A DNA stretch of 64,000 nucleotides from Hamiltosporidium tvaerminnensis FI-OER-3-3 (lineage: Eukaryota > Fungi > Microsporidia), in NCBI GenBank assembly GCA_022605425.2, contig JAKIMF020000005.1, positions 868,001 to 932,000 of the forward strand, written 5' to 3'. The notes beneath the pieces were generated by a model, which worked only from the letters and a program-made list of their open reading frames with translations, did no database searches and was not told where the DNA came from. Shown here in pieces: positions 7,360-60,169 of this stretch. A program made the position numbers and the translations under genes. The first letter of the stretch is position 1. Each line of letters starts with the position of its first letter.

Positions 7360-7653
7360 CTTTGATTCTTATTTATCTTTGTTGGATTTTAAGTATCATA
7401 CATTTGAAAAAATTCAATTTGAATTTAAATGCAATTTTGATCTATGCAACTCTACTGGCATCGAAACTCGTGGTTTTATATTTTTTTGTATTTAGTTTAG
7501 ATTTAAAGTCTCGTATTTTTAGATTTAAAGGTATAGCCTTTTGCCAAGGTTCTATAAATTTTTCAAAAAATATTTTCATTTTGTCGTCAAAATGTTTTAA
7601 ATAAATTATTAATTATATTAAATCGTAATAAACAATCAATTATATGCTATAAG
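7360..7653. repeat. Old, diverged outward extension of the left palindrome arm (partner 60907-61205)
   Basis: Reverse-complement similarity of roughly 75% by eye, e.g. CCAAGGTTCTATAAATTTTTC and CAATTATATGCTATAAG. Confidence 0.75.
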
Positions 7654-8789
7654 ATTTTGAATTAATTTAAACTAAAAGCAAAAATTAATTAAAAATACTT
7701 CAAAGCTTTTTTAAGAATAGAAATTCAAGTTAAAAAATTAATCACTATGTAACATAATTTGACGTATGAGAATCTATAGATTTGATGAAATAATGTATAA
7801 AGATACTATAATTACTATTATCTTGCTTTAATTTACATGTTTAAAAGGCTTAATATATTTTTAATTACGTTTTCTAATTTCTATATGAATTTATTCAAAT
7901 TTTCACAAAGTATTTAAAATAAAAATATAATTTGTAGGCTTGGCGTAGAATTTTTAAAAAAGAAGACCCTATAAATCTACTAAAAAAATATTCTAAATAT
8001 TTAGTAGAATTAAATATTCGTTAGAAAAATTTAAAGGGCATGCTATTTTCATTATTAATAATATCGGATTCTAATCAATTTAGTTTATAATACTTAGATT
8101 AAGAATAAAAAATTATTCGAAATATATTTATGATTCTTTGAATTTAATCGAGAACAATTATATAATATATATTTATTAATTTAAAAAAATATTATTTAAG
8201 CATTTACAAGGAGTATTTCTCGGTTAAAATATAGTTGAATAAATGAATAGAATAGACAGGCACATATATTTTTTAATAAAAATAGAATTAAGATTGAGAT
8301 GAATAAAAGAATAATCAAAGGAATATAAACAATATGAAATTAAAACATATACGCAGTTAACTTTGGTAAATATTAAAGGTAGAATAATTCCTAAATTTAG
8401 TTATAAATTGAAATCAGAATTCATTAAATTTAAATTACGAAACGAAAATTTATTCCCACGAGATAATTATATAATCAGTAGTTAATTTCGAGTTTATGAT
8501 GCTTCTGAAATACAAAAAATTCTAAGTTTTGACTTTTCTGTGTGAATATAAGAAAAACGAGTAATTTTATAAGAATAGATAGATCTTTAGTTTATTTTTT
8601 TGTTTCTTGTCAATAAGAGGATTTCCGGTTCTAAAATAATAAAAAAAACATTTTTCGATGGCTAAAAAATGGAGTTTTTATTAAAAAATATTAATTCTCA
8701 AGAAATCTATTTGAATAAAGTCGCGAAAGGCAAGACAAAAAATTGTAAATTATAAAATTAAAATTTATTTTTACATACTTGAATATACT

Positions 8790-9455
8790 TCAATATTGTT
8801 TTAGTAATTCAGTATCTGTTATTACTTTATTTTGATTTGCAATATTTTTTATAAAATTTGCAATTATAAGTATTTTTTTCATATTTTTGTAATTTAAATC
8901 ATCAGATCCGATCCATATGAATCCATTTACCCCGATAATTATTTCTATGCTTTCTATTTTAAGAAATTGTGTTTTATATCTTGTAACCAGCATTGCAGGT
9001 ACTTCTAATACCAATCCATTGGTTAATTTTTTATATTTTTCATTTCTTGTATGTAATGAGATATTTCCTGATTTATTGATTTTTTGTACTTCAGCAACTA
9101 AAATATCATTTATATCAAAATATTCTCGCATTTTCATTTCATCGGAATACATTTTTCTCCTTTGAACCGAACCCGGAAGATTTATAGCAGATAATTGTAA
9201 TGTTGATTCAGCCTTTGAATTCATTTCAACTTTCCATTTTTTATTTCCAATCATCGTAATTCGTCCTATAATAACATCTCCAACTTCTGGATTGTATCTA
9301 AAATCAATAACAGGCTGAACAGTCATTAACTTATCAATTACAACCAAGTTACCATACAAAGATGAATATAAACCATTATTCTCTTGATAAGAACCATGAC
9401 CATTTATATAACCTTCTATTGTTGGCATTTTTTCACCAGGAAGAAATTTTGTCAT
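8790..9455 (-). CDS. RRP4: Exosome complex component Rrp4 (EXOSC2), copy 1
   Basis: GHGSY N-terminal motif; S1 domain YNPEVGDVIIGRI...WKVEMNS...LQLSAINLPGSVQRRK...ILVAEVQ; KH-like IIIGVNGFIWI. Confidence 0.93.
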   Translation of the reverse strand: MTKFLPGEKMPTIEGYINGHGSYQENNGLYSSLYGNLVVIDKLMTVQPVIDFRYNPEVGDVIIGRITMIGNKKWKVEMNSKAESTLQLSAINLPGSVQRRKMYSDEMKMREYFDINDILVAEVQKINKSGNISLHTRNEKYKKLTNGLVLEVPAMLVTRYKTQFLKIESIEIIIGVNGFIWIGSDDLNYKNMKKILIIANFIKNIANQNKVITDTELLKQY

Positions 9456-9867
9456 TTCAGCGGTAAAAATATTTAAAAAATCTTTTTTTATTTTTCTTGA
9501 AAATTTTTGTAAAAGTTATTGTGCAAGAAAAAAGCCGAAACAAAAATTTTAGAAGGCTCGTTTATTTAAAAAGGTATAAAATATTTATAAGAATTAACGA
9601 AGAAATCAAAGTTAAGATAATTTTAATTAACAATGTAGATCGTTTATTGCGAAAAAACTTGTAATAACCGAATAAAAAATCATAAGCCATTACAAATGCT
9701 CAAATAATCTTCTAAAAAATCCGAAAACAATGTTTATAATATAAATATATCATCTAGACAATTATCTTCACATATAAAACAGATATGCGTTGTATTATTA
9801 AAAATATTCTGCGAAACGTAAAGAAGTAAACCCAATTTAACAATTAAAGACTTGCTTACCCTTCCCG
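9456..9867. promoter_or_regulatory. Divergent (head-to-head) intergenic promoter region of RRP4 and the SMARCAL1-like gene
   Basis: 412 bp between two divergent ATGs; CCCTTCCC immediately before the helicase ATG (microsporidian CCC-like initiation motif). Confidence 0.6.
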
Positions 9868-11508
9868 ATGCCATCTATTCCGGTAGTAAATAAGCCTGTA
9901 AAAATGAAACTTAAAGAAGATGGATCTATAGAAGTTAAACCCTCTAATAAAATTATTTCCACTATTCTAACTTCTTTTCCAAATAAAAAATCGACTTATA
10001 TATTAGAAACGAATTCTTGGAAAATTAATATAGAAATATACGAAGATTTTTGTATAAAATTAAAGCAAAATAAAATTTTATACGAAGAAATTCCTAAAGG
10101 CGTCCTAAACGTTCTCAAAAAAAATATAAAAAATGAATTTTATGATTTAAAAAATGGTATTTATAGTTATTTACTACCATTCCAAATGCAGGGCGTAAAT
10201 TTTGCTTTGAACAGAAAAGGAAAAATTTTATTAGCCGATGATATGGGTTTAGGTAAGACAATACAGGCATTAGCTATAGCATATTATTATAAACTTGAAT
10301 GGCCACTCTTAATTATTGCCCCAGCTTCACTTCTTTATAATTGGGCAGAATCTATAAATACTTTTTTAAAAATGGAAAGTACAATTATTAGAAAAATGTC
10401 TGATTTTGGAGAAAAAATAAGCATTATAAGTTATGATCAAGCTTCCAAGAACTCCGATTTAATTTTAAAACTTAAACATCAAGTTATAATTGTTGATGAG
10501 TGTCATTATTTGAAAAGTCAGCAGTCTAAAAGAACTGTAAATTTACTTCCTATAATTCAAAACTCGACAAGATCAATTTTATTATCAGGTACACCTGCTA
10601 TGAGTAGACCACTCGAACTATTTTCAATTATTTCTGCAATTGATAAATTTATATTTCCTAAATTCTATGAATACGGTAAAAGATATTGCAATGGAAGAAA
10701 GGTTGGGCATTGGTATGATTACAAAGGTTCAAGTAATTTGGAAGAATTAAATTATTTGCTAAATAAAACCTTCATGCTTCGAAGAACTAAAGACTGCGTT
10801 TTAAATGAATTACCAAATAAATTCAGAAGACATGTAATTCTCAATTTGGATGATTCGAAAACCGAAAATAAAGATTCAACTTCTTTAAATAAAATTTTAA
10901 ATGAAAACAAAAAAAATCTTGACGAAAATCTGACTGAAGTAAGTGATAATATTATGACTTTATATTGTGAAGCAGGGAAACTCAAAGCAAACAAAGTTAT
11001 AGAATATTTATCGTGTTTAATAGAAAAACAAATAAAATTTGTAGTTTTTGCTCATCATGGATTTATGATAGAACAAATATCTAAATTTCTTGAAGAGACA
11101 GGTATAAATTTTATTAGAATAGACGGCAAAACACCTGTTAATCACAGGCAACAATTAGTCAACAAATATCAAAATAATGCAAATATAACGGTAGCATTAT
11201 TAGGACTAACAGCATGTGCAAGTGGATTGACACTTACAGAAGGAAAGGCGGTTGTATTTTCTGAATTATACTGGAATCCTGGTACGATGTTGCAAGCAGA
11301 AGATCGAATTCATAGAATAGGACAAAAGGATAGCGTCGATATACATTATTTGATTGGAAAAAACACGATTGACGAATATGTCTGGCCTAAAATACTTAAA
11401 AAGCTGAATGTTCTTGAATCACTTGGAATCGGAACAAACGATTTAAAAGACATTGGACCGTTCGATCTTAAACAAAAAAGACTTGAAAATTTCCTACAAA
11501 AGAAATAA
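9868..11508 (+). CDS. SMARCAL1: SMARCAL1/HARP-like SNF2 annealing helicase, copy 1
   Basis: LLADDMGLGKTIQA (motif I), DECH, LSGTP, and ELYWNPGTMLQAEDRIHRIGQ (SMARCAL1/ZRANB3-type motifs V-VI). The N-terminal Y...NSWKI...Y...L......EEIP..VL resembles a single HARP domain. Confidence 0.85.
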   Translation: MPSIPVVNKPVKMKLKEDGSIEVKPSNKIISTILTSFPNKKSTYILETNSWKINIEIYEDFCIKLKQNKILYEEIPKGVLNVLKKNIKNEFYDLKNGIYSYLLPFQMQGVNFALNRKGKILLADDMGLGKTIQALAIAYYYKLEWPLLIIAPASLLYNWAESINTFLKMESTIIRKMSDFGEKISIISYDQASKNSDLILKLKHQVIIVDECHYLKSQQSKRTVNLLPIIQNSTRSILLSGTPAMSRPLELFSIISAIDKFIFPKFYEYGKRYCNGRKVGHWYDYKGSSNLEELNYLLNKTFMLRRTKDCVLNELPNKFRRHVILNLDDSKTENKDSTSLNKILNENKKNLDENLTEVSDNIMTLYCEAGKLKANKVIEYLSCLIEKQIKFVVFAHHGFMIEQISKFLEETGINFIRIDGKTPVNHRQQLVNKYQNNANITVALLGLTACASGLTLTEGKAVVFSELYWNPGTMLQAEDRIHRIGQKDSVDIHYLIGKNTIDEYVWPKILKKLNVLESLGIGTNDLKDIGPFDLKQKRLENFLQKK

Positions 11509-13154
11509 TAATTGTATAATTTAGTGAGAAATCATTGATTTAAGTATTCTAATAATAATAAAGATTAAATTAAAAAAAATATTTATTCGATTAGTTACAT
11601 TTCCTAAATTCATTATTTTTTCAGAAATATTCAGAAAATAAAATATTTTACTTTGAAATAATAGAAATTATTTTTATTTTTTATAAATAATTTCAATAAA
11701 ATAAAAATTAACTATAATTACATCTCGTTGGACTATTTTTGCTATTTTTCTATTTTATGATTTTTTTTGTTAGATCATTATTTTCTAATATGAGCAACGA
11801 ATTGTTTTTTTGATTCTTGCTTTAGTAAGCAAATAACTATATGTTTGTGGTTTTTCTGTTTTCCTTGATGTCAATCCAAATATGTGATAAAACAATTACA
11901 TGTCTATTTAATAATAAATATAATTTGCAAAAAATTCTATATACATTGAAATGAATTTAATTAAAGTATATTAGTTTTAAAATTAGATAGAATTATTTTT
12001 CAAAAATAAATTCAGATTATTCTAGTATGTTTATCTTAGAATTTAGAGTATGATAATTAAAGACGTCATAAATTAACCATTTATGTTCTATCTGGGAATA
12101 GATAAGAAGATAAAATTTTACGTAATTTACACAAAGAAATCTTATTATACCAAATATAATGATTAAATTTAAAATTTGGTTATTGACTTTGAAATTAGTT
12201 TAAAATTGGGTCGAATTAAAATTTTTTAATGTTCTGAGTTAATTAATAAATTCTTAACTGGATCTATAAGCCAATTCCGTATCCTCTCGAGTCCCAAAAA
12301 CAACTTAAAATAAATAAATGTGAATTTTTATTCTTTCATCTTCGACACCGAAAGATAAAAAAGTAAATGAGTAAGTATATAATTTTTTAATATTTTTTTT
12401 GGCTAGAACAGTCCATTTTTTTTATAAAACATGTATAATCTGCCATGATTGTGTATTTTAAAATTTTTTAAATTCACCGAAAACCATTATTTTCATGTAA
12501 TTCCAAAAAAAAAATTTCAAAATTAACAAAAAATTCAAGGAAAGAAATTTTTTTATTTATGACTTCGGTAGGATATTTCATATACAAGTTTCTGTGTCAA
12601 TAAAATATCAGAAGATTTGGGTGGATTATAACACGCTTTAATTAAATTAAATAGATGTTGAGGCTACTAGAAACCCCTGATATTTCCATCTTATAATTCC
12701 AAATAAAAAAATCAAAAAAAATTATGATTTTAACTTATTAATATTAAATTTTTTGCATATAAAAATAGTGAAACAGCTTAGCCGCAAATATTCTAAGTTT
12801 TTAATTAATATATTAAAAGAGAAGCTCTTGAAAATGTATAAAATACCTTAACATATTCTTAGGTTTGATTCTTTTCTTTTATAATGTAATAACTGATTTT
12901 ATGTTTATTGAGGACATAATAGAAATCTAATTATATGATATTAAAATTCACATGTAAAGTAACATTGTCCAAAGTTATATATTTTTTTATAGATAATACA
13001 TGATTGATTAAAAGATACTTAAATTATTAGATCAGGGTTTTCTTTAGTTTCTATCTTGTAAATTCATTATTATGCATTAACTTTCCATATAAAAAATAGT
13101 AGATTTCTATTTTGAAATATATTTATAGATTCTAGAAAAAGATAAAGAAATATA

Positions 13155-14295
13155 GACATGATGAGCGCCAATTCTTAATGTGGAAAATACCAATAACACC
13201 CATCTTGCACTAATAAAAGGCTTCTTAAAAGTTAAATACAAGTTGTAAGAGGTTTCTAAGAAGACTTAGAGGAAGCTCAACTTACAAAATTATATTCGAA
13301 ATAAAAAAGCGAAAACTTAACAATAAGTTATATAATGCAGGAAAAAACGTGCTTATAAGTCTCGGTGAATCTTCTAGATAGCCAAAGAAAAAAATATTAG
13401 GCTACGAGCTGAAGGAGTGATCTGCTATATCTAGGATAGAAATGTATTATGGAGATCAGAAGGCGTGGGCCAACACTGCAGAAATTTTGGTATACAGGAG
13501 GTCCTTTAGAATCTCGATGTAAAAAAGGCTTGGTCATTACTATAATAGACGGTATAATGAATTGGTTAGATGCCTGGAATTTCGTCTTCTAAATGATTAT
13601 AAATTAAAGTCTTCAAAACGAATAAATAGTCACTCAGTTCAAGAAATTCTTGAAAACGAGTATGCAAAGATAAGAGTGTACACCAGAATAAAACCTGAAT
13701 TCGAAACTCGGAATAATAGACCCGACATATTTTTTAAATAAGATGAAGAATAAGATAACACTCATTGAAGTGGAATCACTTTTCAAGATTCACTTCAAAT
13801 AGTTAGAACACGGAAGCCTAGGAAGTATGACCTATTAGCAAATGAGTTAGGTCTTATTTATAATTTAGTGTTAGAATAATCTCTTCTGTGATTACCTGAG
13901 TTGGTATTGTAGCAAAATATCATGATTCAAACCTAAAAAAACTAAAAATGCTCATTAATCTAGAGGAAAATACATTCAATCGATTGTACTCAAGAAGAAG
14001 GTCGGAACAGTGTCTTCTGATAGAAGAAGAGGATTTACGTGTTTCAAAAAGGTAAAGAGCGGCAATATTTTTTATTAAAAGGGGCCGAAATGCATGAGGA
14101 ACAAATACCCCCTTTAAAACATGCTAATATCCAGGAAGATAGTCTTAAAACAAAAAATAATACACCAACTATTTCAGAAGGAGAAACCATGTTGAAGAAA
14201 CCGGCATAAACATAGATGAATTGTCGGATCAAAGAGGAACAGATAATGCTTAAGGAGTTAGACGAAAATATATAAAAGTTCGAAAATGATTTAAA
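13155..14295 (+). mobile_element. Degenerate 5'-truncated non-LTR retrotransposon with restriction-like endonuclease (R4/R2/NeSL-type C-terminus), copy 1
   Basis: Frameshifted remnants of THLALIKGFLKVKY, a decayed zinc-knuckle/RHN region, HSVQEILENEYAKIRV, NNRPDIF, ITLIEV and RKYDLLANELGLIY (PD-(D/E)xK RLE), followed by an acidic tail. Confidence 0.85.
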
Positions 14296-15265
14296 CCAAA
14301 AATTTTTTTAACCTAGATATTTTTATGTATTAAATACTAAATGGACCATTGTTTATCAGGTGCCTTTGAAAAATAAAATATATTCTATGCCAAGCTTTGA
14401 TGGTTTCGCTTATAAATATATAAATTGAAAACCAGTCATCTAATTACAGGTGTTCCTACTTTCCTTCGACTTGCCAATAAATGTGTATTGAATGGTATAT
14501 TCTTCTAAATATTTTAAATCCGATTTTTAAATGCAAATTATCAAGATAATTATGGTTCTTAAGGCAAACACTGAAAACTAGTTAAACAGTAAAGAACAAC
14601 TGGGTTTATTAACCAACAAAAAACAAAATTTATTGAGTATTTTACAATATTTTTTAAATAGCAACGAACAAACACTGTAAAATATAATATAGAAAACAAA
14701 ATATTTGATGTTTTACTGGAATTGAAAATATAACAAGTGCGATTGAGTTTTGGATTGATTAAGTATGTGTATATTTGAAAGTCATGGATTATTTCTTTAA
14801 AGAATAAAAAAATTAATCCGAAACGAAATGCAAATATATACAAAATAATACTTTTAAATATAAATTTCAAATTATAAAGCCACCGAAAACCCAATTTTTA
14901 ACAAAATATAATCTATAAATACAATATTTAGAAATATATAGCAATTGATTTTATATTTAAGTTTTACCAAGAAACAGATTTAAGTCGTAAGCAATAAAAC
15001 CGCAATGAACAGAAGAAATTCGCAAATAGAAGAGTAAACGCTTCTTCAATTACGCAGGGGAAATTAAAAAAAATTTAAAGCAAGAAGATTATAAAGAATA
15101 AAAATGGCATAAATGAACATATTACATAAATTGGTTTTAGCTTAAAATATTCTGCACATTGGTTTTTTAGTGAAACATGTAAAATTTTATTTTCATATTG
15201 ATGTAGATAGTATTTGGAAAAACTCAAAATTTAAAAGAATATAATTGTTATGCAGCAAAAGCATA

Positions 15266-15405
15266 ACCATTGAGTAATTTTGTGATATGAAATACAGATC
15301 AACCATTGAAAATTATGATTTTAATATTTTACGTTATTAAGTTGTGATATGAAATAAGGATCAACATTAGAGAATTATATATTTGATATTCTACTTAATT
15401 GAATT
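15266..15405. repeat. Imperfect ~62-bp tandem duplication in the spacer upstream of rDNA (mirror ~52440-52580)
   Basis: TGTGATATGAAATACAGATCAACCATTGAAAATTATG vs TGTGATATGAAATAAGGATCAACATTAGAGAATTATA. Confidence 0.6.
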
Positions 15406-16439
15406 AATTGGAGAAGAATATTAAAATAACTAATTATTACAAACCGGAGTGCTTAATTTAGTATTTATAGCATTGAGATATGGTTTCAAATTGTTTAATA
15501 TATAGTGAGTTCAAATGCGAGAATATTTTGCAAATAAATCCAAAAGAACTATTTATAAATACTTAAAGCAAGCAAATCGTTTTGAAGCCAGTAGTCTTCA
15601 TTATTTTCTAAAATTAAATAATTTTTTTTCTATTAATTTGTTTAGATTTTCTTATGTGTTTATAATTTCTGTTTTTAAAAAAATTCGTCGTGTGGAATTT
15701 TTTGACAAAGCAAATATTTATTAAAATAATGATGTTAAAAAACATGCAATAAGTAAATATTATTTTATAAATTATAAAATCTAATATGTCTTTAGGTAAC
15801 AGTAATTTCTATAAAAGTTAATCTTCAGTGAAAATATTTGATTATTTTCAAATACAATTATTAAAAATATAATAAAATGACAGAAAGGTATTTTTTTTGG
15901 TAAAATAGCATTTATATATTAAAACTATAACAAAAATACACTTTCAATCATATTTTTAGAAATAAATTTTATTAAAAAAAGATCTTTTGATATTTTTGAC
16001 ATGATAAAATACTTTTTTAATTTATAAAAAAATTCTTAACCGTTGTATGTTCGAAGGAAAAACCTGGAAATAGAAAAACAATTTTTTTAAATAGAACATC
16101 TTCTTGGAGTTAAATATTAACGAATGTGATATTCATATACACAAAAGAAAAATTTGATGTTTAGTATTTTTTCTTTTTTAGATATATGATTCGTTAGTAG
16201 AGAATGGGTAAGAAAAGAAATTTGAAATAATTTAACATATTTAGAATTCTTTATATTAGAAATAAGTTGATTGATTGATTTTATTTTTTATTGGTGTTAT
16301 ATTCTCTAAATATTTTTAAAAAAATTGATTTGGTGTTAAAATTACTGTGAAAATTATTTTTTTCGTATATAAAGGATGTTATTTATAGAACTGTTTACCC
16401 CAAATCATATGAGAATTAAAATGTCAATAGAAAACACTA

Positions 16440-16776
16440 AGAATGAGACAAATCAACCAGAAATTACAATTGCATGTAACCGTAGAAATCAAGTTGATCT
16501 AATCAAATTGATCTACAAACGTACTTTCGAATCATTAACTTAGTTGTTAATTCACGTGATTTAGATCAATGATCAAATCGATATGGTGTTCTAGTTACTT
16601 TGACATGTTCAAGTAACAAATTGGTGTTACATATGGTTACTGCTCTGATGCAGATTTTGGAGGTTTTCCGTTGTTACTTTGGTTTCTTGTGCTGCTTTAT
16701 TCATCGGGATTAAGTTATGGACTCAACGAGTCAAATGTGTGTGATTTGGATGTGACGTGTAATGGTATATTTGTGC
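16440..16776 (+). promoter_or_regulatory. Putative RNA Pol I promoter / 5' ETS region of rDNA copy 1
   Basis: Lies directly upstream of the SSU; GC rises; tandem ATCAA(G/A)TTGAT palindromes, TCACGTGA and repeated GTTAC/GTAAC motifs. Boundaries are inferred. Confidence 0.45.
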
Positions 16777-18078
16777 AACAGGTTGATTCTGCCTGACGAG
16801 GATGCTTGTCTCTGGGATTAAGCCATGCAAGTCTGGTGAAGCGAAAGTGGAACTGCGAACGGCTCAGTAGAACGGTGATTATTTAATCGTGTAGGAAGGA
16901 TAACCGCGGGAAACTGTGGCTAATAACACGAGTAAGACGCCGACCCATCAGTTTTATCGTACGGTAAGGGCGTACGATGGCTTTAACGGGTACGGGGGAT
17001 CAGGGTTTGATTCCGGAGAGGGAGCCTGAGAAACGGCTACCAGGTCTAAGGACAGCAGCAGGCGCGAAACTTGCCCAATTGGAGAGAGGCAGTTATGAGA
17101 CGTATATTTTGTAACCGGGGTAGAATACCGGTGATTGACTGGAGGGCAAGTCTGGTGCCAGCAGCCGCGGTAATTCCAGCTCCAGGAGTGTCATAGTGCA
17201 TTGCTGCATTTAAAAGGTCCGTAGTCAGTGTTGACAGGGATGCTAGAAGACACTTTCTTCATGGAGTGTATTGGCATTCTAGGTTAGCATGTAGGAGCGG
17301 AAGAGGGCGACTGTATTGCGTAGCGAGAGGTGAAAGTTGACGACCTACGTAGGACAAACCGAAGCGAAAGCTGTCGTCCAGTACGTTTCCGGTGATCAAG
17401 GACGTAAGCCGGAGGAGCAAAGGTGATTAGAGACCCCTGTAGTTCCGGCCGTAAACTATGCCAACTGGGTGTTACGTAGTGGTACCCACGAGAAATCAAG
17501 TATATGGGCTATGGGGATAGTACGATCGCAAGATTGAAACTTGAAGAAATTGACGGAAGGACACCACCAGGAGTGGAGTGTGCGGCTTAATTTGACTCAA
17601 CGCGGGACAACTTACCAGGGCCAGTTGTATGACGAATCTTTGATGAGTACGACTAAGTGGTGCATGGCCGTTCACAACATGTGAGGTGACTTTTAGGTTT
17701 ATTGCTGTAATGTGTGAGACCCTCAGCTACGGCGACTGGGGACTATAAGTTTCAGGAAGGAGGGGGCTATAACAGGTCTGTGATGCCCTTAGATGTTCTG
17801 GGCTGCACGCGCACTACAATGTTATTTCTAGGTATAATGTAAAGATAAAGGATAACTCGGTTGGGATTGCGTTCTGTAATGGACGCATGAACCAGGAATT
17901 CCTAGTAGTCGCGTGTCACTAACGGGCGACGACTGCGTCCCTGTTCTTTGTACACACCGCCCGTCGTTATCTAAGATGGTGCTATGTTCGAAGAGGGTTT
18001 TCCTTCTGAGGACGTAGGATTAGATTGGATACAAGTCGTAACAAGGTTGCTGTAGGAGAACCTGCAGCAGGATCAGTG
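16777..18078 (+). rRNA. Small-subunit (16S-like) rRNA, microsporidian, ~1.3 kb, copy 1
   Basis: 5' ACAGGTTGATTCTGCCTGAC; GTGCCAGCAGCCGCGGTAATTCCAGCTCC; TTGTACACACCGCCCGTCG; 3' GTCGTAACAAGGTTGCTGTAGGAGAACCTGCAGCAGGATCA. Confidence 0.98.
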
Positions 18079-18111
18079 CTAGTACTTTTATTGTGTAGTT
18101 TTTTCATTTTA
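18079..18111 (+). other. Single short ITS (~33 bp, T-rich), copy 1
   Basis: Lies between the SSU 3' GGATCA and the 5.8S-like start AACTCATACAAGGGATCACTTGGCTC. Confidence 0.8.
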
Positions 18112-19785: not shown

Positions 19786-19839
<54 letters not shown>

Positions 19840-19936
19840 CCTAATTAGTGACGCGCACGAAAGGAGCAACGAGATTCCCACTGTCCCGACTAACAACCTG
19901 CGAACCCACGAGCCAAGGGAACGGTCTTGGCTATGC

Positions 19937-19973
<37 letters not shown>

Positions 19974-47565: not shown

Positions 47566-47597
<32 letters not shown>

Positions 47598-47873
47598 ACG
47601 TCACCCATTGCTAGATGCTCTGTAAGCAATGGGATCGCTAGGCCTGGGTTTCCCCTCGTATTACCGTGTAGTAATACGTCAGGGTGGCTTTTGCCCTTGG
47701 ACTACACCCTCGGTTTCTCTCCGAAGTTAGCCACCCTTAGGCCATCTGCGTTGTAGTCTAGCAGATGTACCGCCCCAGTCAAACTCCCCATCTGACAAAT
47801 ACGGGTCGCTTGCACAGCTAGTGGTCTTTCAGTTGCCCCACCTTGCTACAGCTGCACAAGACCCCGGCGTCAC

Positions 47874-47910
<37 letters not shown>

Positions 47911-48007
47911 GCATAGCCAAGACCGTTCCCTTGGCTCGTGGGTTCGCAGGTTGTTAGTCGGGACAGTGGGAATCTCGTTGCTCCTTTCGTGCGCGTCACT
48001 AATTAGG

Positions 48008-48061
<54 letters not shown>

Positions 48062-49735: not shown

Positions 49736-49768
49736 TAAAATGAAAAAACTACACAATAAAAGTACTAG

Positions 49769-51070
49769 CACTGATCCTGCTGCAGGTTCTCCTACAGCAA
49801 CCTTGTTACGACTTGTATCCAATCTAATCCTACGTCCTCAGAAGGAAAACCCTCTTCGAACATAGCACCATCTTAGATAACGACGGGCGGTGTGTACAAA
49901 GAACAGGGACGCAGTCGTCGCCCGTTAGTGACACGCGACTACTAGGAATTCCTGGTTCATGCGTCCATTACAGAACGCAATCCCAACCGAGTTATCCTTT
50001 ATCTTTACATTATACCTAGAAATAACATTGTAGTGCGCGTGCAGCCCAGAACATCTAAGGGCATCACAGACCTGTTATAGCCCCCTCCTTCCTGAAACTT
50101 ATAGTCCCCAGTCGCCGTAGCTGAGGGTCTCACACATTACAGCAATAAACCTAAAAGTCACCTCACATGTTGTGAACGGCCATGCACCACTTAGTCGTAC
50201 TCATCAAAGATTCGTCATACAACTGGCCCTGGTAAGTTGTCCCGCGTTGAGTCAAATTAAGCCGCACACTCCACTCCTGGTGGTGTCCTTCCGTCAATTT
50301 CTTCAAGTTTCAATCTTGCGATCGTACTATCCCCATAGCCCATATACTTGATTTCTCGTGGGTACCACTACGTAACACCCAGTTGGCATAGTTTACGGCC
50401 GGAACTACAGGGGTCTCTAATCACCTTTGCTCCTCCGGCTTACGTCCTTGATCACCGGAAACGTACTGGACGACAGCTTTCGCTTCGGTTTGTCCTACGT
50501 AGGTCGTCAACTTTCACCTCTCGCTACGCAATACAGTCGCCCTCTTCCGCTCCTACATGCTAACCTAGAATGCCAATACACTCCATGAAGAAAGTGTCTT
50601 CTAGCATCCCTGTCAACACTGACTACGGACCTTTTAAATGCAGCAATGCACTATGACACTCCTGGAGCTGGAATTACCGCGGCTGCTGGCACCAGACTTG
50701 CCCTCCAGTCAATCACCGGTATTCTACCCCGGTTACAAAATATACGTCTCATAACTGCCTCTCTCCAATTGGGCAAGTTTCGCGCCTGCTGCTGTCCTTA
50801 GACCTGGTAGCCGTTTCTCAGGCTCCCTCTCCGGAATCAAACCCTGATCCCCCGTACCCGTTAAAGCCATCGTACGCCCTTACCGTACGATAAAACTGAT
50901 GGGTCGGCGTCTTACTCGTGTTATTAGCCACAGTTTCCCGCGGTTATCCTTCCTACACGATTAAATAATCACCGTTCTACTGAGCCGTTCGCAGTTCCAC
51001 TTTCGCTTCACCAGACTTGCATGGCTTAATCCCAGAGACAAGCATCCTCGTCAGGCAGAATCAACCTGTT
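49769..51070 (-). rRNA. Small-subunit rRNA, copy 2
   Basis: Reverse complement of 16777-18078 (GTCAGGCAGAATCAACCTGT at ~51050-51069). Confidence 0.98.
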
Positions 51071-53550
51071 GCACAAATATACCATTACACGTCACATCCA
51101 AATCACACACAATTGACTCGTTGAGTCCATAACTTAATCCCGATGAATAAAGCAGCACAAGAAACCAAAGTAACAACGGAAAACCTCCAAAATCTGCATC
51201 AGAGCAGTAACCATATGTAACACCAATTTGTTACTTGAACATGTCAAAGTAACTAGAACACCATATCGATTTGATCATTGATCTAAATCACGTGAATTAA
51301 CAACTAAGTTAATGATTCGAAAGTACGTTTGTAGATCAATTTGATTAGATCAACTTGATTTCTACGGTTACATGCAATTGTAATTTCTGGTTGATTTGTC
51401 TCATTCTTAGTGTTTTCTATTGACATTTTAATTCTCATATGATTTGGGGTAAACAGTTCTATAAATAACATCCTTTATATACGAAAAAAATAATTTTCAC
51501 AGTAATTTTAACACCAAATCAATTTTTTTAAAAATATTTAGAGAATATAACACCAATAAAAAATAAAATCAATCAATCAACTTATTTCTAATATAAAGAA
51601 TTCTAAATATGTTAAATTATTTCAAATTTCTTTTCTTACCCATTCTCTACTAACGAATCATATATCTAAAAAAGAAAAAATACTAAACATCAAATTTTTC
51701 TTTGTGTATATAAATATCACATTCGTTAATATTTAACTCCAAGAAGATGTTCTATTTAAAAAAATTGTTTTTCTATTTCCAGGTTTTTCCTTCGAACATA
51801 CAACGGTTAAGAATTTTTTTATAAATTAAAAAAGTATTTTATCATGTCAAATATATCAAAAGATCTTTTTTTAATCAAATTTATTTCTAAAAATATGATT
51901 GAAAGTGTATTTTTGTTATAGTTTTAATATATAAATGCTATTTTACCAAAAAAAATACCTTTCTGTCATTTTATTATATTTTTAATAATTGTATTTAAAA
52001 ATAATCAAATATTTTCACTGAAGATTAACTTTTATAGAAATTACTGTTACCTAAAGACATATTAGATTTTATAATTTATAAAATAATATTTGCTTATTGC
52101 ATGTTTTTTAACATCATTATTTTAATAAATATTTGCTTTGTCAAAAAATTCCACACGACGAATTTTTTTAAAAACAGAAATTATAAACACATAAGAAAAT
52201 CTAAACAAATTAATAGAAAAAAAATTATTTAATTTTAGAAAATAATGAAGACTACTGGCTTCAAAACGATTTGCTTGCTTTAAGTATTTATAAATAGTTC
52301 TTTTGGATTTATTTGCAAAATATTCTCGCATTTGAACTCACTATATATTAAACAATTTGAAACCATATCTCAATGCTATAAATACTAAATTAAGCACTCC
52401 GGTTTGTAATAATTAGTTATTTTAATATTCTTCTCCAATTAATTCAATTAAGTAGAATATCAAATATATAATTCTCTAATGTTGATCCTTATTTCATATC
52501 ACAACTTAATAACGTAAAATATTAAAATCATAATTTTCAATGGTTGATCTGTATTTCATATCACAAAATTACTCAATGGTTATGCTTTTGCTGCATAACA
52601 ATTATATTCTTTTAAATTTTGAGTTTTTCCAAATACTATCTACATCAATATGAAAATAAAATTTTACATGTTTCACTAAAAAACCAATGTGCAGAATATT
52701 TTAAGCTAAAACCAATTTATGTAATATGTTCATTTATGCCATTTTTATTCTTTATAATCTTCTTGCTTTAAATTTTTTTTAATTTCCCCTGCGTAATTGA
52801 AGAAGCGTTTACTCTTCTATTTGCGAATTTCTTCTGTTCATTGCGGTTTTATTGCTTACGACTTAAATCTGTTTCTTGGTAAAACTTAAATATAAAATCA
52901 ATTGCTATATATTTCTAAATATTGTATTTATAGATTATATTTTGTTAAAAATTGGGTTTTCGGTGGCTTTATAATTTGAAATTTATATTTAAAAGTATTA
53001 TTTTGTATATATTTGCATTTCGTTTCGGATTAATTTTTTTATTCTTTAAAGAAATAATCCATGACTTTCAAATATACACATACTTAATCAATCCAAAACT
53101 CAATCGCACTTGTTATATTTTCAATTCCAGTAAAACATCAAATATTTTGTTTTCTATATTATATTTTACAGTGTTTGTTCGTTGCTATTTAAAAAATATT
53201 GTAAAATACTCAATAAATTTTGTTTTTTGTTGGTTAATAAACCCAGTTGTTCTTTACTGTTTAACTAGTTTTCAGTGTTTGCCTTAAGAACCATAATTAT
53301 CTTGATAATTTGCATTTAAAAATCGGATTTAAAATATTTAGAAGAATATACCATTCAATACACATTTATTGGCAAGTCGAAGGAAAGTAGGAACACCTGT
53401 AATTAGATGACTGGTTTTCAATTTATATATTTATAAGCGAAACCATCAAAGCTTGGCATAGAATATATTTTATTTTTCAAAGGCACCTGATAAACAATGG
53501 TCCATTTAGTATTTAATACATAAAAATATCTAGGTTAAAAAAATTTTGGG

Positions 53551-54690
53551 TTTAAATCATTTTCGAACTTTTATATATTTTCGTCTAACTCCTTAAGCAT
53601 TATCTGTTCCTCTTTGATCCGACAATTCATCTATGTTTATGCCGGTTTCTTCAACATGGTTTCTCCTTCTGAAATAGTTGGTGTATTATTTTTTGTTTTA
53701 AGACTATCTTCCTGGATATTAGCATGTTTTAAAGGGGGTATTTGTTCCTCATGCATTTCGGCCCCTTTTAATAAAAAATATTGCCGCTCTTTACCTTTTT
53801 GAAACACGTAAATCCTCTTCTTCTATCAGAAGACACTGTTCCGACCTTCTTCTTGAGTACAATCGATTGAATGTATTTTCCTCTAGATTAATGAGCATTT
53901 TTAGTTTTTTTAGGTTTGAATCATGATATTTTGCTACAATACCAACTCAGGTAATCACAGAAGAGATTATTCTAACACTAAATTATAAATAAGACCTAAC
54001 TCATTTGCTAATAGGTCATACTTCCTAGGCTTCCGTGTTCTAACTATTTGAAGTGAATCTTGAAAAGTGATTCCACTTCAATGAGTGTTATCTTATTCTT
54101 CATCTTATTTAAAAAATATGTCGGGTCTATTATTCCGAGTTTCGAATTCAGGTTTTATTCTGGTGTACACTCTTATCTTTGCATACTCGTTTTCAAGAAT
54201 TTCTTGAACTGAGTGACTATTTATTCGTTTTGAAGACTTTAATTTATAATCATTTAGAAGACGAAATTCCAGGCATCTAACCAATTCATTATACCGTCTA
54301 TTATAGTAATGACCAAGCCTTTTTTACATCGAGATTCTAAAGGACCTCCTGTATACCAAAATTTCTGCAGTGTTGGCCCACGTCTTCTGATCTCCATAAT
54401 ACATTTCTATCCTAGATATAGCAGATCACTCCTTCAGCTCGTAGCCTAATATTTTTTTCTTTGGCTATCTAGAAGATTCACCGAGACTTATAAGCACGTT
54501 TTTTCCTGCATTATATAACTTATTGTTAAGTTTTCGCTTTTTTATTTCGAATATAATTTTGTAAGTTGAGCTTCCTCTAAGTCTTCTTAGAAACCTCTTA
54601 CAACTTGTATTTAACTTTTAAGAAGCCTTTTATTAGTGCAAGATGGGTGTTATTGGTATTTTCCACATTAAGAATTGGCGCTCATCATGT
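53551..54690 (-). mobile_element. Degenerate RLE non-LTR retrotransposon relic, copy 2
   Basis: Mirror of 13155-14295, carrying essentially the same disabling lesions. Confidence 0.85.
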
Positions 54691-56336
54691 CTATATTTCT
54701 TTATCTTTTTCTAGAATCTATAAATATATTTCAAAATAGAAATCTACTATTTTTTATATGGAAAGTTAATGCATAATAATGAATTTACAAGATAGAAACT
54801 AAAGAAAACCCTGATCTAATAATTTAAGTATCTTTTAATCAATCATGTATTATCTATAAAAAAATATATAACTTTGGACAATGTTACTTTACATGTGAAT
54901 TTTAATATCATATAATTAGATTTCTATTATGTCCTCAATAAACATAAAATCAGTTATTACATTATAAAAGAAAAGAATCAAACCTAAGAATATGTTAAGG
55001 TATTTTATACATTTTCAAGAGCTTCTCTTTTAATATATTAATTAAAAACTTAGAATATTTGCGGCTAAGCTGTTTCACTATTTTTATATGCAAAAAATTT
55101 AATATTAATAAGTTAAAATCGTAATTTTTTTTGATTTTTTTATTTGGAATTATAAGATGGAAATATCAGGGGTTTCTAGTAGCCTCAACATCTATTTAAT
55201 TTAATTAAAGCGTGTTATAATCCACCCAAATCTTCTGATATTTTATTGACACAGAAACTTGTATATGAAATATCCTACCGAAGTCATAAATAAAAAAATT
55301 TCTTTCCTTGAATTTTTTGTTAATTTTGAAATTTTTTTTTTGGAATTACATGAAAATAATGGTTTTCGGTGAATTTAAAAAATTTTAAAATACACAATCA
55401 TGGCAGATTATACATGTTTTAAAAAAAATTGTACTGTTCTAGCCAAAAAAAATATTAAAAAATTATATACTTACTCATTTACTTTTTTATCTTTCGGTGT
55501 CGAAGATGAAAGAATAAAAATTCACATTTATTTATTTTAAGTTGTTTTTGGGACTCGAGAGGATACGGAATTGGCTTATAGATCCAGTTAAGAATTTACC
55601 AATTAACTCAGAACATTAAAAAATTTTAATTCGACCCAATTTTAAACTAATTTCAAAGTCAATAACCAAATTTTAAATTTAATCATTATATTTGGTATAA
55701 TAAGATTTCTTTGTGTAAATTACGTAAAATGAGATCTTCTTATCTATTCCCAGATAGAACATAAATGGTTAATTTATGACGTCTTTAATTATCATACTCT
55801 AAATGCTAACATAAACATACTAGAATAATCTGAATTTATTTTTGAAAAATAATTCTATCTAATTTTAAAACTAATATACTTTAATTAAATTCATTTCAAT
55901 GTATATAGAATTTTTTGCAAATTATATTTATTATTAAATAGACATGTAATTGTTTTATCACATATTTGGATTGACATCAAGGAAAACAGAAAAACCACAA
56001 ACATATAGTTATTTGCTTACTAAAGCAAGAATCAAAAAAACAATTCGTTGCTCATATTAGAAAATAATGATCTAACAAAAAAAATCATAAAATAGAAAAA
56101 TAGCAAAAATAGTCCAACGAGATGTAATTATAGTTAATTTTTATTTTATTGAAATTATTTATAAAATATAAAAATAATTTCTATTATTTCAAAGTAAAAT
56201 ATTTTATTTTCTGAATATTTCTGAAAAAATAATGAATTTAGGAAATGTAACTAATCGAATAAATATTTTTTTTAATTTAATCTTTATTATTATTAGAATA
56301 CTTAAATCAATGATTTCTCACTAAATTATACAATTA

Positions 56337-57977
56337 TTATTTCTTTTGTAGGAAATTTTCAAGTCTTTTTTGTTTAAGATCGAACGGTCCAATGTCTTTT
56401 AAATCGTTTGTTCCGATTCCAAGTGATTCAAGAACATTCAGCTTTTTAAGTATTTTAGGCCAGACATATTCGTCAATCGTGTTTTTTCCAATCAAATAAT
56501 GTATATCGACGCTATCCTTTTGTCCTATTCTATGAATTCGATCTTCTGCTTGCAACATCGTACCAGGATTCCAGTATAATTCAGAAAATACAACCGCCTT
56601 TCCTTCTGTAAGTGTCAATCCACTTGCACATGCTGTTAGTCCTAATAATGCTACCGTTATATTTGCATTATTTTGATATTTGTTGACTAATTGTTGCCTG
56701 TGATTAACAGGTGTTTTGCCGTCTATTCTAATAAAATTTATACCTGTCTCTTCAAGAAATTTAGATATTTGTTCTATCATAAATCCATGATGAGCAAAAA
56801 CTACAAATTTTATTTGTTTTTCTATTAAACACGATAAATATTCTATAACTTTGTTTGCTTTGAGTTTCCCTGCTTCACAATATAAAGTCATAATATTATC
56901 ACTTACTTCAGTCAGATTTTCGTCAAGATTTTTTTTGTTTTCATTTAAAATTTTATTTAAAGAAGTTGAATCTTTATTTTCGGTTTTCGAATCATCCAAA
57001 TTGAGAATTACATGTCTTCTGAATTTATTTGGTAATTCATTTAAAACGCAGTCTTTAGTTCTTCGAAGCATGAAGGTTTTATTTAGCAAATAATTTAATT
57101 CTTCCAAATTACTTGAACCTTTGTAATCATACCAATGCCCAACCTTTCTTCCATTGCAATATCTTTTACCGTATTCATAGAATTTAGGAAATATAAATTT
57201 ATCAATTGCAGAAATAATTGAAAATAGTTCGAGTGGTCTACTCATAGCAGGTGTACCTGATAATAAAATTGATCTTGTCGAGTTTTGAATTATAGGAAGT
57301 AAATTTACAGTTCTTTTAGACTGCTGACTTTTCAAATAATGACACTCATCAACAATTATAACTTGATGTTTAAGTTTTAAAATTAAATCGGAGTTCTTGG
57401 AAGCTTGATCATAACTTATAATGCTTATTTTTTCTCCAAAATCAGACATTTTTCTAATAATTGTACTTTCCATTTTTAAAAAAGTATTTATAGATTCTGC
57501 CCAATTATAAAGAAGTGAAGCTGGGGCAATAATTAAGAGTGGCCATTCAAGTTTATAATAATATGCTATAGCTAATGCCTGTATTGTCTTACCTAAACCC
57601 ATATCATCGGCTAATAAAATTTTTCCTTTTCTGTTCAAAGCAAAATTTACGCCCTGCATTTGGAATGGTAGTAAATAACTATAAATACCGTTTTTTAAAT
57701 CATAAAATTCATTTTTTATATTTTTTTTGAGAACGTTTATGACGCCTTTAGGAATTTCCTCGTATAAAATTTTATTTTGCCTTAATTTTATACAAAAATC
57801 TTCGTATATTTCTATATTAATTTTCCAAGAATTCGTTTCTAATATATAAGTCGATTTTTTATTTGGAAAAGAAGTTAGAATAGTGGAAATAATTTTATTA
57901 GAGGGTTTAACTTCTATAGATCCATCTTCTTTAAGTTTCATTTTTACAGGCTTATTTACTACCGGAATAGATGGCAT
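56337..57977 (-). CDS. SMARCAL1: SMARCAL1/HARP-like SNF2 helicase, copy 2
   Basis: 546 aa; identical to copy 1 except IKLKQ>IKLRQ and GVLNV>GVINV. Confidence 0.85.
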   Translation of the reverse strand: MPSIPVVNKPVKMKLKEDGSIEVKPSNKIISTILTSFPNKKSTYILETNSWKINIEIYEDFCIKLRQNKILYEEIPKGVINVLKKNIKNEFYDLKNGIYSYLLPFQMQGVNFALNRKGKILLADDMGLGKTIQALAIAYYYKLEWPLLIIAPASLLYNWAESINTFLKMESTIIRKMSDFGEKISIISYDQASKNSDLILKLKHQVIIVDECHYLKSQQSKRTVNLLPIIQNSTRSILLSGTPAMSRPLELFSIISAIDKFIFPKFYEYGKRYCNGRKVGHWYDYKGSSNLEELNYLLNKTFMLRRTKDCVLNELPNKFRRHVILNLDDSKTENKDSTSLNKILNENKKNLDENLTEVSDNIMTLYCEAGKLKANKVIEYLSCLIEKQIKFVVFAHHGFMIEQISKFLEETGINFIRIDGKTPVNHRQQLVNKYQNNANITVALLGLTACASGLTLTEGKAVVFSELYWNPGTMLQAEDRIHRIGQKDSVDIHYLIGKNTIDEYVWPKILKKLNVLESLGIGTNDLKDIGPFDLKQKRLENFLQKK

Positions 57978-58389
57978 CGGGAAGGGTAAGTAAGTCTTTA
58001 ATTGTTAAATTGGGTTTACTTCTTTACGTTTTGCAGAATATTTTTAATAATACAGCGCGTATCTGTTTTATATGTGAAGATAATTGTCTAGATGATATAT
58101 TTATATTATAAATATTGTTTTCTGTTTTTTTAGAAGATTATTTGAGCATTTGTAATGGCTTATGATTTTTTATTCGGTTATTACAAGTGTTTTCGCAATA
58201 AACGATCTACATTGTTAATTAAAATTATCTTAACTTTGATTTCTCCGTTAATTCTTAAAAAATATTTTATACCTTTTTAAATAAACGAGCCTTCTAAAAT
58301 TTTTGTTTCGGCTTTTTTCTTGCACAATAACTTTTACAAAAATTTTCAAGAAAAATAAATTTAGATTTTTCAAAATTTTTACCGCTGAA

Positions 58390-59055
58390 ATGAAAAAATT
58401 TCTTCCTGGTGAAAAAATGCCAACAATAGAAGGTTATATAAATGGTCATGGTTCTTATCAAGAGAATGATGGTTTATATTCATCTTTGTATGGTAACTTG
58501 GTTGTAATTGATAAGTTAATGACTGTTCAGCCTGTTATTGATTTTAGATACAATCCAGAAGTTGGAGATGTCATTATAGGACGAATTACGATGATTGGAA
58601 ATAAAAAATGGAAAGTTGAAATGAATTCAAAGGCTGAATCAACATTACAATTATCTGCTATAAACCTTCCGGGTTCGGTTCAAAGGAGAAAAATGTTTTC
58701 CGATGAAATGAAAATGCGAGAATATTTTGATATAAATGATATTTTAGTTGCTGAAGTACAAAAAATCAATAAATCAGGAAATATCTCATTACATACAAGA
58801 AATGAAAAATATAAAAAATTAACCAATGGATTGGTATTAGAAGTACCTGCAATGCTGGTTACAAGATATAAAACACAATTTCTTAAAATCGAAAGCATAG
58901 AAATAATTATCGGGGTAAATGGATTCATATGGATCGGATCTGATGATTTAAATTACGAAAATATGAAAAAAATACTTATAATCGCAAATTTTATAAAAAA
59001 TATTGCAAATCAAAATAAAGTAATAACAGATACTGAATTACTAAAACAATATTGA
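58390..59055 (+). CDS. RRP4: Exosome complex component Rrp4, copy 2
   Basis: ATG at 58390 mirrors copy 1; the ORF track's TTG start at 58303 is not credible for a eukaryote. Four aa differences: MTK>MKK, ENNG>ENDG, KMYS>KMFS, NYKN>NYEN. Confidence 0.93.
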   Translation: MKKFLPGEKMPTIEGYINGHGSYQENDGLYSSLYGNLVVIDKLMTVQPVIDFRYNPEVGDVIIGRITMIGNKKWKVEMNSKAESTLQLSAINLPGSVQRRKMFSDEMKMREYFDINDILVAEVQKINKSGNISLHTRNEKYKKLTNGLVLEVPAMLVTRYKTQFLKIESIEIIIGVNGFIWIGSDDLNYENMKKILIIANFIKNIANQNKVITDTELLKQY

Positions 59056-60169
59056 AGTATATTCAAGTATGTAAAAATAAATTTTAATTTTATAATTTAC
59101 AATTTTTTGTTTTGCCTTTCGCGACTTTATTCAAATAGATTTCTTGAGAATAATATTTTCTAATAAAAACTCCATTTTTTAGCCATCGAAAAATGTTTTT
59201 TTTATTATTTTAGAACCGGAAATTCTCTTATTGACAAGAAACAAAAAAATAAACTAAAGATCTATCTATTCTTATAAAATTACTCGTTTTTCTTATATTC
59301 ACACAGAAAAGTCAAAACTTAGAATTTTTTGTATTTCAGAAGCATCATAAACTCGAAATTAACTACTGATTATATAATTATCTCGTGGGAATAAATTTTC
59401 GTTTCATAATTTATATTTAATGAATTCTGATTTCAATTTATAACTAAATTTAGGAGTTATTCTACTTTTAATATTTACCAAAGTTATCTGCGTATATGTT
59501 TTAATTTCATATTGTTTATATTCCTTTGATTATTCTTTTATTCATCCCAATCTTAATTCTATTTTTATTAAAAAATATATGTGCCTGTCTATTCTATTCA
59601 TTTATTCAACTATATTTTAAACGAGAAATACTCCTTGATAATGCTTAAATAAGATTTTTTTAATTACTAAATGTATATTATACAATTGTCCTCGAGTACA
59701 TTCAAAGAATCATTAATATATTTCGAGTTTTTTTTATTCTTAATCTAAGTATTATAAACTAAATTGATTAGAATCCGATAGTATTAATAATGAAAATAGC
59801 ATGGCCTTTAAATTTTTCTAACGAATATTTAATTCTACTAAATATTTAGAATATTTTTTTAGTAGATTTATAGGGTCTGGTTTTTTAAAAACTCTACGCC
59901 AAGCCTACAAATTATATTTTTATTTTAAATACTTTGTGAAAATTTGAATAAATTCATATAGAAATTAGAAAACGTAATTAAAAATAAATTAAGCCTTTAA
60001 AAAATATAATTTAAAGCAATATTATAGTAATTATAGTATCTTTATATGTCATTTCATCAAATCTATAGATTCTCATACGTCAAATTATGTTACATAGTGA
60101 TTAATTTTTTAACTTGAATTTCTATTCTTAAAAAAGCTTTGAATTATTTTAAATCAATCCAAAATCTTA

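Follow-up and report, generated by a model that had tools for sequence, protein, structure and literature searches.

The window analysed here, a 64,000-nucleotide stretch of the Hamiltosporidium tvaerminnensis genome, contains a pair of rRNA operons within a nested palindrome. All feature coordinates are window positions, and the pair is hereafter called C14. The left operon consists of the SSU (16776-18078; Rfam RF02542) and LSU (18183-20671; RF02543) rRNA genes on the forward strand, while the LSU (47176-49664) and SSU (49769-51071) genes of the right operon, also detected by Rfam, are on the reverse strand. Both operons therefore face the palindrome centre. Self-BLAST of the window recovers two pairs of inverted arms: the outer arms at 7684-21214 and 46634-60158 (13,543 columns, 98.6% identity), and the inner arms at 21200-25352 and 41902-46058 (96%). 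An earlier note on this DNA had described a 52-kb nested palindrome with outer arms of ~13 kb and inner arms of 3.7 kb, in which both rDNA units are transcribed toward the centre, and our searches agree on both counts. The 52-kb palindrome is a real, interstitial, inward-facing rDNA pair. It is not extrachromosomal, as single-copy genes flank it on a 1.46-Mb contig and its arm variants occur at single-copy depth. A tRNA search returned none, and Rfam at a relaxed threshold gave no matches within 20600-47250.

Different single-copy genes lie on the two sides, as the earlier note had stated and Pfam bears out. On the left are a RING-variant (RINGv) E3 ligase gene (2-2170, reverse strand; PF12906), whose ORF continues past the window start and which also adjoins RRP4 in H. 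magnivora L024, and a 112-aa ORF (5508-5846, forward strand), which is called likewise in L024. On the right is the coding stretch of VMA7 (V-ATPase subunit F, ATP-synt_F; 62938-63270, forward strand; PF01990), which also adjoins RRP4 in H. magnivora L023. Between these flanks and the rDNA, the outer arms consist of locus-specific DNA (7684-15959 and its partner 51887-60158, matched by self-BLAST), with divergence of up to 12% at the tip and 0-2% inside, and the only long genome match of 7700-13000 is the partner arm. Each arm carries an intact gene for the exosome subunit RRP4 (8790-9455, reverse strand, 221 aa, PF21266/PF15985; 58390-59055, forward strand, Pfam) and an intact gene for an SNF2 helicase, whose homologues are named SMARCAL1-like (9868-11508, forward strand, 546 aa, Pfam; 56337-57977, reverse strand, an ORF compared with the left copy). 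The two copies differ by 4 amino acids in RRP4 and by 2 in the helicase, and both genes are found in the genome only in the two C14 arms. In addition, both arms contain a degenerate fragment of a dispersed non-LTR retroelement family (13131-14311, partner 53535-54715), ~77% identical to many genome copies; the same family includes a 1209-aa RT copy at C1:1240645-1244283. Outside the arms lies the oldest outer stratum (7287-7653), which is 76-80% identical to 60907-61266, its sole other match in the genome. This right partner is severed from the remaining right arm by an insertion of ~740 bp, a dispersed non-coding element (60160-60920, from the arm alignment) at which the right arm currently ends on its outer side.

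Toward the centre, the rDNA is bounded by 5′ spacers, presumed to be promoter regions, at 15960-16775 (forward strand; 0.1-1.1% divergence among the six arms read) and, by cassette comparison, at 51072-51886 (reverse strand). A stripe of 3′ spacer (20750-21211, forward strand) differs by 7-8% between the arms, and adjoins a 590-bp non-coding insertion present in the right arm only (46048-46637, reverse strand). Minimum free energy folding of the head of this insertion is no better than that of shuffles, in a test that does not reach pseudoknotted ribozymes. The inner arms proper (21212-24900, and 42351-46047 by self-BLAST) have 22% GC and no long ORF, and differ by 0.03%. They are followed by an old inner stratum, in which 24901-26363 and 40904-42350 are 64-69% identical and which is present at all five loci described below; the inverted match spans 24801-26363 and 40904-42455 (64% over 1.6 kb, E 1e-131). 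Accordingly, ~1.5 kb at either end of the 17.4-kb spacer belongs to an older inverted stratum, and the non-palindromic core is confined to 26364-40903 (14.5 kb). Within this core, a search for inverted homology yields only weak AT-rich self-matches without a symmetry centre, and no intact host gene was found. The core contains an APE-endonuclease/RT LINE (26373-31560, forward strand; PF00078), which is in pieces at C14, while its copy on C1 carries PF03372 and PF00078. This family has seven long copies, and all of its genome matches lie within the five rDNA cassettes. In Gurleya and other microsporidia, the best matches to it are ~33% identical, and the contig of the one match checked shows no similarity to the Hamiltosporidium rDNA loci.

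How far does this arrangement recur? The rDNA of the genome consists of five inward-facing pairs (ten operons) and no other rDNA, which answers the question, raised in the earlier note, of whether other rDNA loci share the layout. The tail-to-tail layout itself is already published: Angst, Ebert and Fields (2025; PMC12449221) describe ten operons in H. tvaerminnensis at five interstitial tail-to-tail sites around specific LINEs, and a shared layout in Gurleya vavrai. The G. vavrai assembly GCA_052575965.1 has seven such pairs. The C14 operons, at 884776-888671 (+) and 915176-919071 (−) on the contig, which is scaffold_5 in their Table S2, match the pair listed there at 884,776-919,071, as well as the published tail-to-tail interstitial site and the LINE between the operons. 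The architecture is, as had been claimed, an interstitial inward-facing palindrome; it is neither one-off nor unreported, being the sole rDNA layout here and already published. That paper gives the orientation and the LINE co-location, and the word “palindrome” is absent from its main text. The shared 36-kb cassette, the arms in locus-specific DNA, the duplicated genes, the strata, the conversion, the H. magnivora junctions and the depth are not found in the parts of the paper compared here.

The cassette of ~36 kb (15960-51886) comprises the rDNA, inner arms, core and core LINE, and is present at all five loci with ~10% divergence. The loci C14, C1a and C1b were read as sequence, and C10 and C17 by match coordinates only. 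The spacer had been regarded as unique; apart from the older stratum at its ends, it recurs at the four other rDNA pairs, with 83-96% identity in the segments tested. The C14 spacer is collinear end to end with those of C1a and C1b, the core, inner arms and core LINE keep a common order at all five loci, and the cassette ends at 15960 and 51886 are sharp and shared in the loci examined. Beyond these ends, the outer arms extend through 7 to 15+ kb of locus-specific DNA at the loci read, duplicating intact genes; for example, eIF6 is found in the genome only in the two C1b arms.

At the loci read, the two arms of one locus are far closer to each other than to matching DNA at other loci. Inner-arm divergence is 0.03% within C14, 0.49% within C1a and 6.1% within C1b, as compared with 6.1-10.5% between loci and 8.6-10.5% between the C14 inner arm and its counterpart at two other loci. 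The C14 arms diverge by 0-0.8% over most of 10000-20500, and their differences are concentrated in the tip (7684-8620, up to 12%), the stripe (20750-21210, 7-8%), the 590-bp insertion and the old strata, so that the arm-specific differences, insertions and strata previously claimed are all located. Relatives of the 590-bp insertion (88% identical) occur in the right arm of C1b, and at C10 and C17 each arm has one in a symmetrical position; a LINE insertion is likewise found in both arms at C1a. The rRNA divergence is at most 0.3%, with the exception of one decayed copy. Between loci, the core divergence varies in patches, with 1.6-2.1% at 26-28 kb and 10-13% in the adjacent DNA, and the quartet topology changes at 25-26 kb. 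The divergence of the oldest outer stratum (20-24%) exceeds that of the core between loci (~10%).

Comparison with H. magnivora dates the C14 arms. In an independent assembly of this species, one contig links RRP4 to the RINGv flank and a second contig links it to the VMA7 flank. The presence of both junctions places the C14 duplication before the H. tvaerminnensis/H. magnivora split, and yet the arms are still >99% alike over most of their length. Moreover, 29 arm-fixed differences at 7684-8438 are common to the two species. Over 8482-8611, two H. magnivora assemblies have a left arm that is distinct at 10 sites and an indel, while the left arm of H. tvaerminnensis is of the right type, against a divergence of 0.4-2.2% between the species in the left flank; on this alignment, the segment appears to be a polarised right-to-left conversion tract in H. 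tvaerminnensis, with the comparison assemblies being fragmented drafts that may collapse arms or mix loci. Sites at 8660-9540 that seemed species-specific in both arms were discarded as evidence of conversion, because each species has both alleles. Synteny did not orient the RRP4–SMARCAL1 duplication, as the neighbours of SMARCAL1 are different in two more distant microsporidia.

We propose that one ancestral palindromic cassette probably spread to five sites, that gene conversion between arms and between loci has kept its copies alike, and that it has expanded in the manner of a plastid inverted repeat. The cassette would have the order promoter spacer, SSU, LSU, inner arm, 14.5-kb core with the LINE, inner arm, LSU, SSU and promoter spacer, over ~36 kb. 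Its arms would pair in cis and repair one another by gene conversion, which would homogenise them and transfer insertions between them. Where conversion fails, beside large insertions and at arm tips, strata would be left behind. Repair synthesis running beyond the arm end could copy the neighbouring single-copy DNA to the opposite side, and this expansion may have duplicated RRP4 and SMARCAL1 at C14 and eIF6 at C1b before the two species split. RRP4 and eIF6 have roles in ribosome biogenesis. Ectopic conversion between loci would keep the rRNA genes and 5′ spacer near-identical and occasionally overwrite kilobase patches of the core. Inversion of the core, probably a rare event, is expected from crossover between the arms, and flip-flop of the core at C14 is plausible. 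The rDNA pair would then act as a two-copy unit of concerted evolution that replaces the tandem array. A possible benefit, suggested by the geometry, is that replication forks from the flanks would run in the same direction as Pol I and converge within the gene-free core. We regard as doubtful the more ambitious reading of a nuclear plastid-like inverted-repeat system, in which the cassette spreads as a unit, the core flips in living populations, the arms grow outward and fix extra neighbour genes, and the 26-33 kb spacer of most pairs in Hamiltosporidium and Gurleya is under selection, for instance as a fork-termination zone keeping replication co-directional with Pol I.

The rDNA palindromes of Tetrahymena, Physarum and Dictyostelium are extrachromosomal, high-copy linear minichromosomes transcribed outward; C14 likewise has two rDNA units as a palindrome, but is chromosomal, low-copy and inward-facing. 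In plastids, the inverted repeat holds two rRNA operons around a small single-copy region. The analogy with it, drawn in the earlier note, fits well: two rRNA operons in large inverted repeats face a single-copy region of 15-18 kb, the arms are homogenised, and shifting boundaries capture neighbouring genes (RRP4 and SMARCAL1 at C14, eIF6 at C1b). Unlike it, the Hamiltosporidium system is nuclear and chromosomal, with five loci that have homologous cores without intact host genes. Orientation isomers of the plastid inverted repeat are discussed in PMC7426004. The mammalian X/Y palindromes, as described in the portions of PMC3723533 and PMC8981503 compared here, resemble C14 in having >99% identical arms around a spacer, a duplication older than a species split, conversion tracts and intact duplicated genes. 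They differ in that C14 is built around rDNA, its core recurs at several loci, and its inner arms show no GC enrichment.

The sharp common ends at 15960 and 51886, as well as the five dispersed copies with similar spacer sizes, could alternatively reflect a giant composite or foldback mobile element with the rDNA units as terminal inverted repeats. We consider this unlikely. The shared core yielded no transposase, and there is no visible target-site duplication, although arm growth would erase any. The ends may just mark the limit of inter-locus rDNA homogenisation. Furthermore, the C14 locus is conserved in H. magnivora, and the outermost stratum of this locus predates the divergence of the cores.

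The earlier note also raised the idea that the palindrome is a scar left where two subtelomeres, both bearing rDNA, fused end to end; as an explanation of each pair, we now judge this very improbable. In Table S2 of PMC12449221, Encephalitozoon has single subtelomeric units that resemble C14 in being dispersed and non-tandem, with transcription toward a repeat-rich gene-free zone, whereas the Hamiltosporidium operons are interstitial, paired and without telomere repeats. The same table has the E. intestinalis operons facing the telomere, so that a subtelomere fusion would give tail-to-tail pairs, and a single ancient foldback or fusion could have left behind the inner stratum of 64-69% identity. 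However, neither tandem TTAGGG nor TTAGG is present in the window or the two C1 cores (three cores in all), the outer arms hold locus-specific housekeeping genes, and subtelomeric rDNA is argued to be the derived state in the part of PMC12449221 that treats it. Independent fusions would not yield a common asymmetric core, with the LINE at an identical position, at all five loci. Fusion at each locus is largely refuted, which leaves room for no more than a single ancient fusion at the founding of the cassette.

An assembly artefact, joining two haplotypes or loci via the rDNA repeat, is hardly credible. Two stretches of the arms, of 8 kb and 3.7 kb, are ~100% identical, which might permit a wrong flank–core pairing or core orientation, but the ONT reads of the assembly total 2.75 Gb and have an N50 of 32.7 kb (PMC10542269), longer than the arms. 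Both outer junctions exist in the independent H. magnivora assembly, and five copies have distinct, ~10% diverged cores. In two runs from different studies, the left and right arm variants are at full flank depth (55/62 vs 59-61 in X1, and 365/375 vs 373-387 in X15); in a further raw-read run, X22, no DNA of the C14 locus was found. These observations uphold the earlier view that no simple chimeric artefact is involved. The AT-rich, gene-free core with retroelements between inverted repeats recalls the regional centromeres of fission yeast or Komagataella, but it is scarcely probable that it is one, because the five sites lie on only 4 of 17 contigs, with two on C1, which is complete with telomeres at both ends, and none on most complete chromosomes, rather than one per chromosome.

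Since the headline layout is published, it does not count as a discovery. Existing long reads make it directly possible to test whether a nuclear rDNA core undergoes flip-flop inversion and how fast one arm converts the other, and fragmented assemblies, which collapse the arms, can miscount RRP4, SMARCAL1 and eIF6. The added anatomy bears on how uniformity is maintained among the rRNA operons of a eukaryote that has only ten of them and lacks a tandem array, namely by paired palindromes, arm conversion and patchy inter-locus conversion, each as proposed above. The expanding arms would also show how genes can be stably duplicated in a parasite with a reduced genome.

All ten rRNA operons in the H. 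tvaerminnensis assembly searched (21,638,905 bases, 17 contigs; PMC10542269) lie in five tail-to-tail pairs: one in the window (contig C14), two on contig C1 (loci C1a and C1b), and one each on contigs C10 and C17. The layout at the window is thus shared by all of the other rDNA loci. Since PMC12449221 describes the same ten operons as five tail-to-tail pairs, each around specific LINEs, and its Table S2 gives the window's pair at identical coordinates, the tail-to-tail arrangement was already known, and the headline layout is published for this very locus. The same paper gives 14 operons at seven sites in Gurleya vavrai. We did not find the details presented here—the shared cassette, the growth of the arms, and the conversion—reported in the open-access literature, and analogues are known.

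Self-comparison of the window resolved outer inverted arms (7684–21214 versus 46634–60158, 98.6% identity) and inner inverted arms (21200–25352 versus 41902–46058, 96%). Each arm carries one microsporidian SSU and one LSU (Rfam), and both operons are directed at the centre. These results, together with the RINGv E3 and VMA7 genes in the left and right flanks, bear out the architecture described in the earlier note. The arm-to-arm divergence is 12% and 4% in the two outermost 500-bp bins, 1–2% around RRP4, 0–0.8% over most of 10000–20500, and zero over the rRNA genes. It reaches 7–8% in a stripe at 20750–21210, adjoining a 590-bp right-arm insertion, is approximately zero at 21500–24500, and then increases steeply. 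The first 10 bases of the insertion (46048–46637) are identical to the sequence directly 3′ of the LSU end (20680–20690). A sensitive search extended the palindrome outward (7287–7653 versus 60907–61266, 76%), beyond an approximately 740-bp right-arm insertion, and this outer stratum has no further match anywhere in the genome. The inward extension (24801–26363 versus 40904–42455, 64%) restricts the non-palindromic core to 26364–40903. The core regions 32400–33700 and 38350–38620 are insertions of two dispersed repeat families, which have many copies across the genome at about 74% and 81% identity.

How is this locus related to the others? The approximately 36-kb segment 15960–51886, hereafter called the "cassette", is collinear with both C1 loci (~88–92% outside the rDNA), and the inner arms, core LINE, central core segment, and right core end occur in the same order at all five loci (C10 and C17 were compared by match coordinates; the window, C1a, and C1b at the sequence level). 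The spacer, formerly regarded as unique, is therefore part of a repeated unit. The core LINE encodes an APE-type endonuclease and RT, is fragmented in the window, and had no copy outside the cassettes in a genome search. Drafts from a different H. tvaerminnensis isolate and from a second Hamiltosporidium assembly contain cores as well. The LSU-to-LSU spacer is 26.5–29.7 kb at four loci, similar to the 27–33 kb at five of the seven G. vavrai loci; at C1a it is 39.6 kb, with two extra LINE copies. Younger copies of the LINE lie ~370 bp past the LSU in both C1a arms (C1:586483–591621 and 620497–625328), differ by 0.8%, and in one case retain an endonuclease-RT ORF of 1195 aa. A 2.1-kb insertion peculiar to the C1a core (C1:609543–611669) resembles a DNA transposon: it has terminal inverted repeats of 56 bp and part of an integrase-like ORF, recognized by eye. 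The core orientation is identical at all five cassettes in the assembly (chance ~1 in 16).

Beyond the cassette, the arms are locus-specific. The outer arms of the window have long matches only to each other, C1a has its own arms of ~7 kb, and the C1b arms are 15 kb or longer, additional inverted homology (C1:1175001–1177330 versus 1261606–1263924, 96.7%) persisting as far as the edge of the examined region, so that this palindrome may exceed 89 kb. At C17, a repeat placed symmetrically 785 bp beyond both cassette ends indicates that the arms extend there too. The window arms each contain an intact RRP4 (8790–9455 and 58390–59055; 4 amino acid differences) and an intact SMARCAL1-like helicase (2 differences). 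eIF6 is duplicated in the C1b arms (C1:1192135–1192857 and 1253419–1254141) and found nowhere else in the genome, while KRR1 (C1:638595–639428) lies immediately beyond the right arm of C1a. Ribosome-biogenesis genes thus occur in or beside the arms at the three loci read, a post hoc observation on small numbers.

The palindrome is well supported as real by its outer junctions and by the depth at the arm tips. In an independent H. magnivora assembly, one contig carries RRP4 followed by the 112-aa ORF (window 5508–5846, + strand) and RINGv, and another carries RRP4 followed by VMA7; they match the left and right junctions at 98%. The depths of the left/right arm-tip variants are 55/62 versus 59–61 for the unique flank, and 365/375 versus 373–387 (contigs, runs of different studies; such depths are approximate, and the runs may derive from one laboratory isolate). 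Each variant is therefore at flank depth, which would be expected of two loci but not of two haplotypes; the earlier view that this is no chimeric artefact is supported.

The arms are homogenised within loci. The inner arms (21212–24900 and 42351–46047 in the window) diverge by 0.03% at the window locus, 0.49% at C1a, and 6.1% at C1b, versus 6.1–10.5% between loci, and insertions are present in copied form in both arms. C1b, with the least homogenised arms, is also the locus of a decaying right operon (C1:1234006–1238180), whose LSU 3′ part is 86% identical and interrupted by an insertion. At the arm tip, 29 left/right differences are fixed in both H. tvaerminnensis and H. magnivora, and the duplication therefore predates the species split. 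At 8482–8611, the left arm of two H. magnivora assemblies differs at 10 sites plus an indel, far above the 0.4–2.2% left-flank divergence between the species, whereas the left arm of this genome carries the right-arm variant, a pattern that we interpret as a right-to-left conversion tract. Nearby (8660–9540), two diverged arm alleles, each found in assemblies of both species, are an apparent trans-species polymorphism.

Between loci, the rRNA and 5′ spacer are at most 1.1% apart, except for the one decayed operon. The core divergence is patchy (1.6–2.1% at 26–28 kb versus 10–13% alongside; C1a versus C1b, 0.1–4% in the left part and 6–17% in the right), and the quartet topology changes at 25–26 kb, the fourth sequence being a possibly mixed draft contig. 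Because the oldest outer stratum has diverged further (20–24%) than the cores have between loci (~10%), we infer that these may be old loci with a cassette renewed by ectopic conversion.

One cassette thus occupies five sites, with palindromic extensions at each locus and homogenised arms. We propose that intrachromosomal arm pairing drives the conversion, and that DNA synthesis beyond the arm end would copy the flank to the opposite side, as in plastid inverted repeat expansion. Large insertions may block conversion and thereby leave the strata, and the rDNA on either side would permit sequence exchange among the loci. Crossovers between the arms, the flip-flop envisaged in the earlier note, would invert the core; inversions are described as rare relative to conversion in Y palindromes (PMC3723533). 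Alternatively, the cassette could conceivably be a mobile composite element, but it has no transposase and no target duplications are visible. A fusion of rDNA-bearing chromosome ends, also raised earlier, matches the geometry of the tail-to-tail pairs; however, tandem TTAGGG or TTAGG repeats are absent from the window and both C1 cores, all of the loci have a single shared core, and the arms carry genes, so that fusion could explain at most one founding event. A centromeric core is at odds with the distribution of the five sites over four contigs, with two sites on one complete chromosome. A putative benefit of the inward orientation of the rDNA could be that replication is co-directional with Pol I transcription and terminates in the gene-free core.
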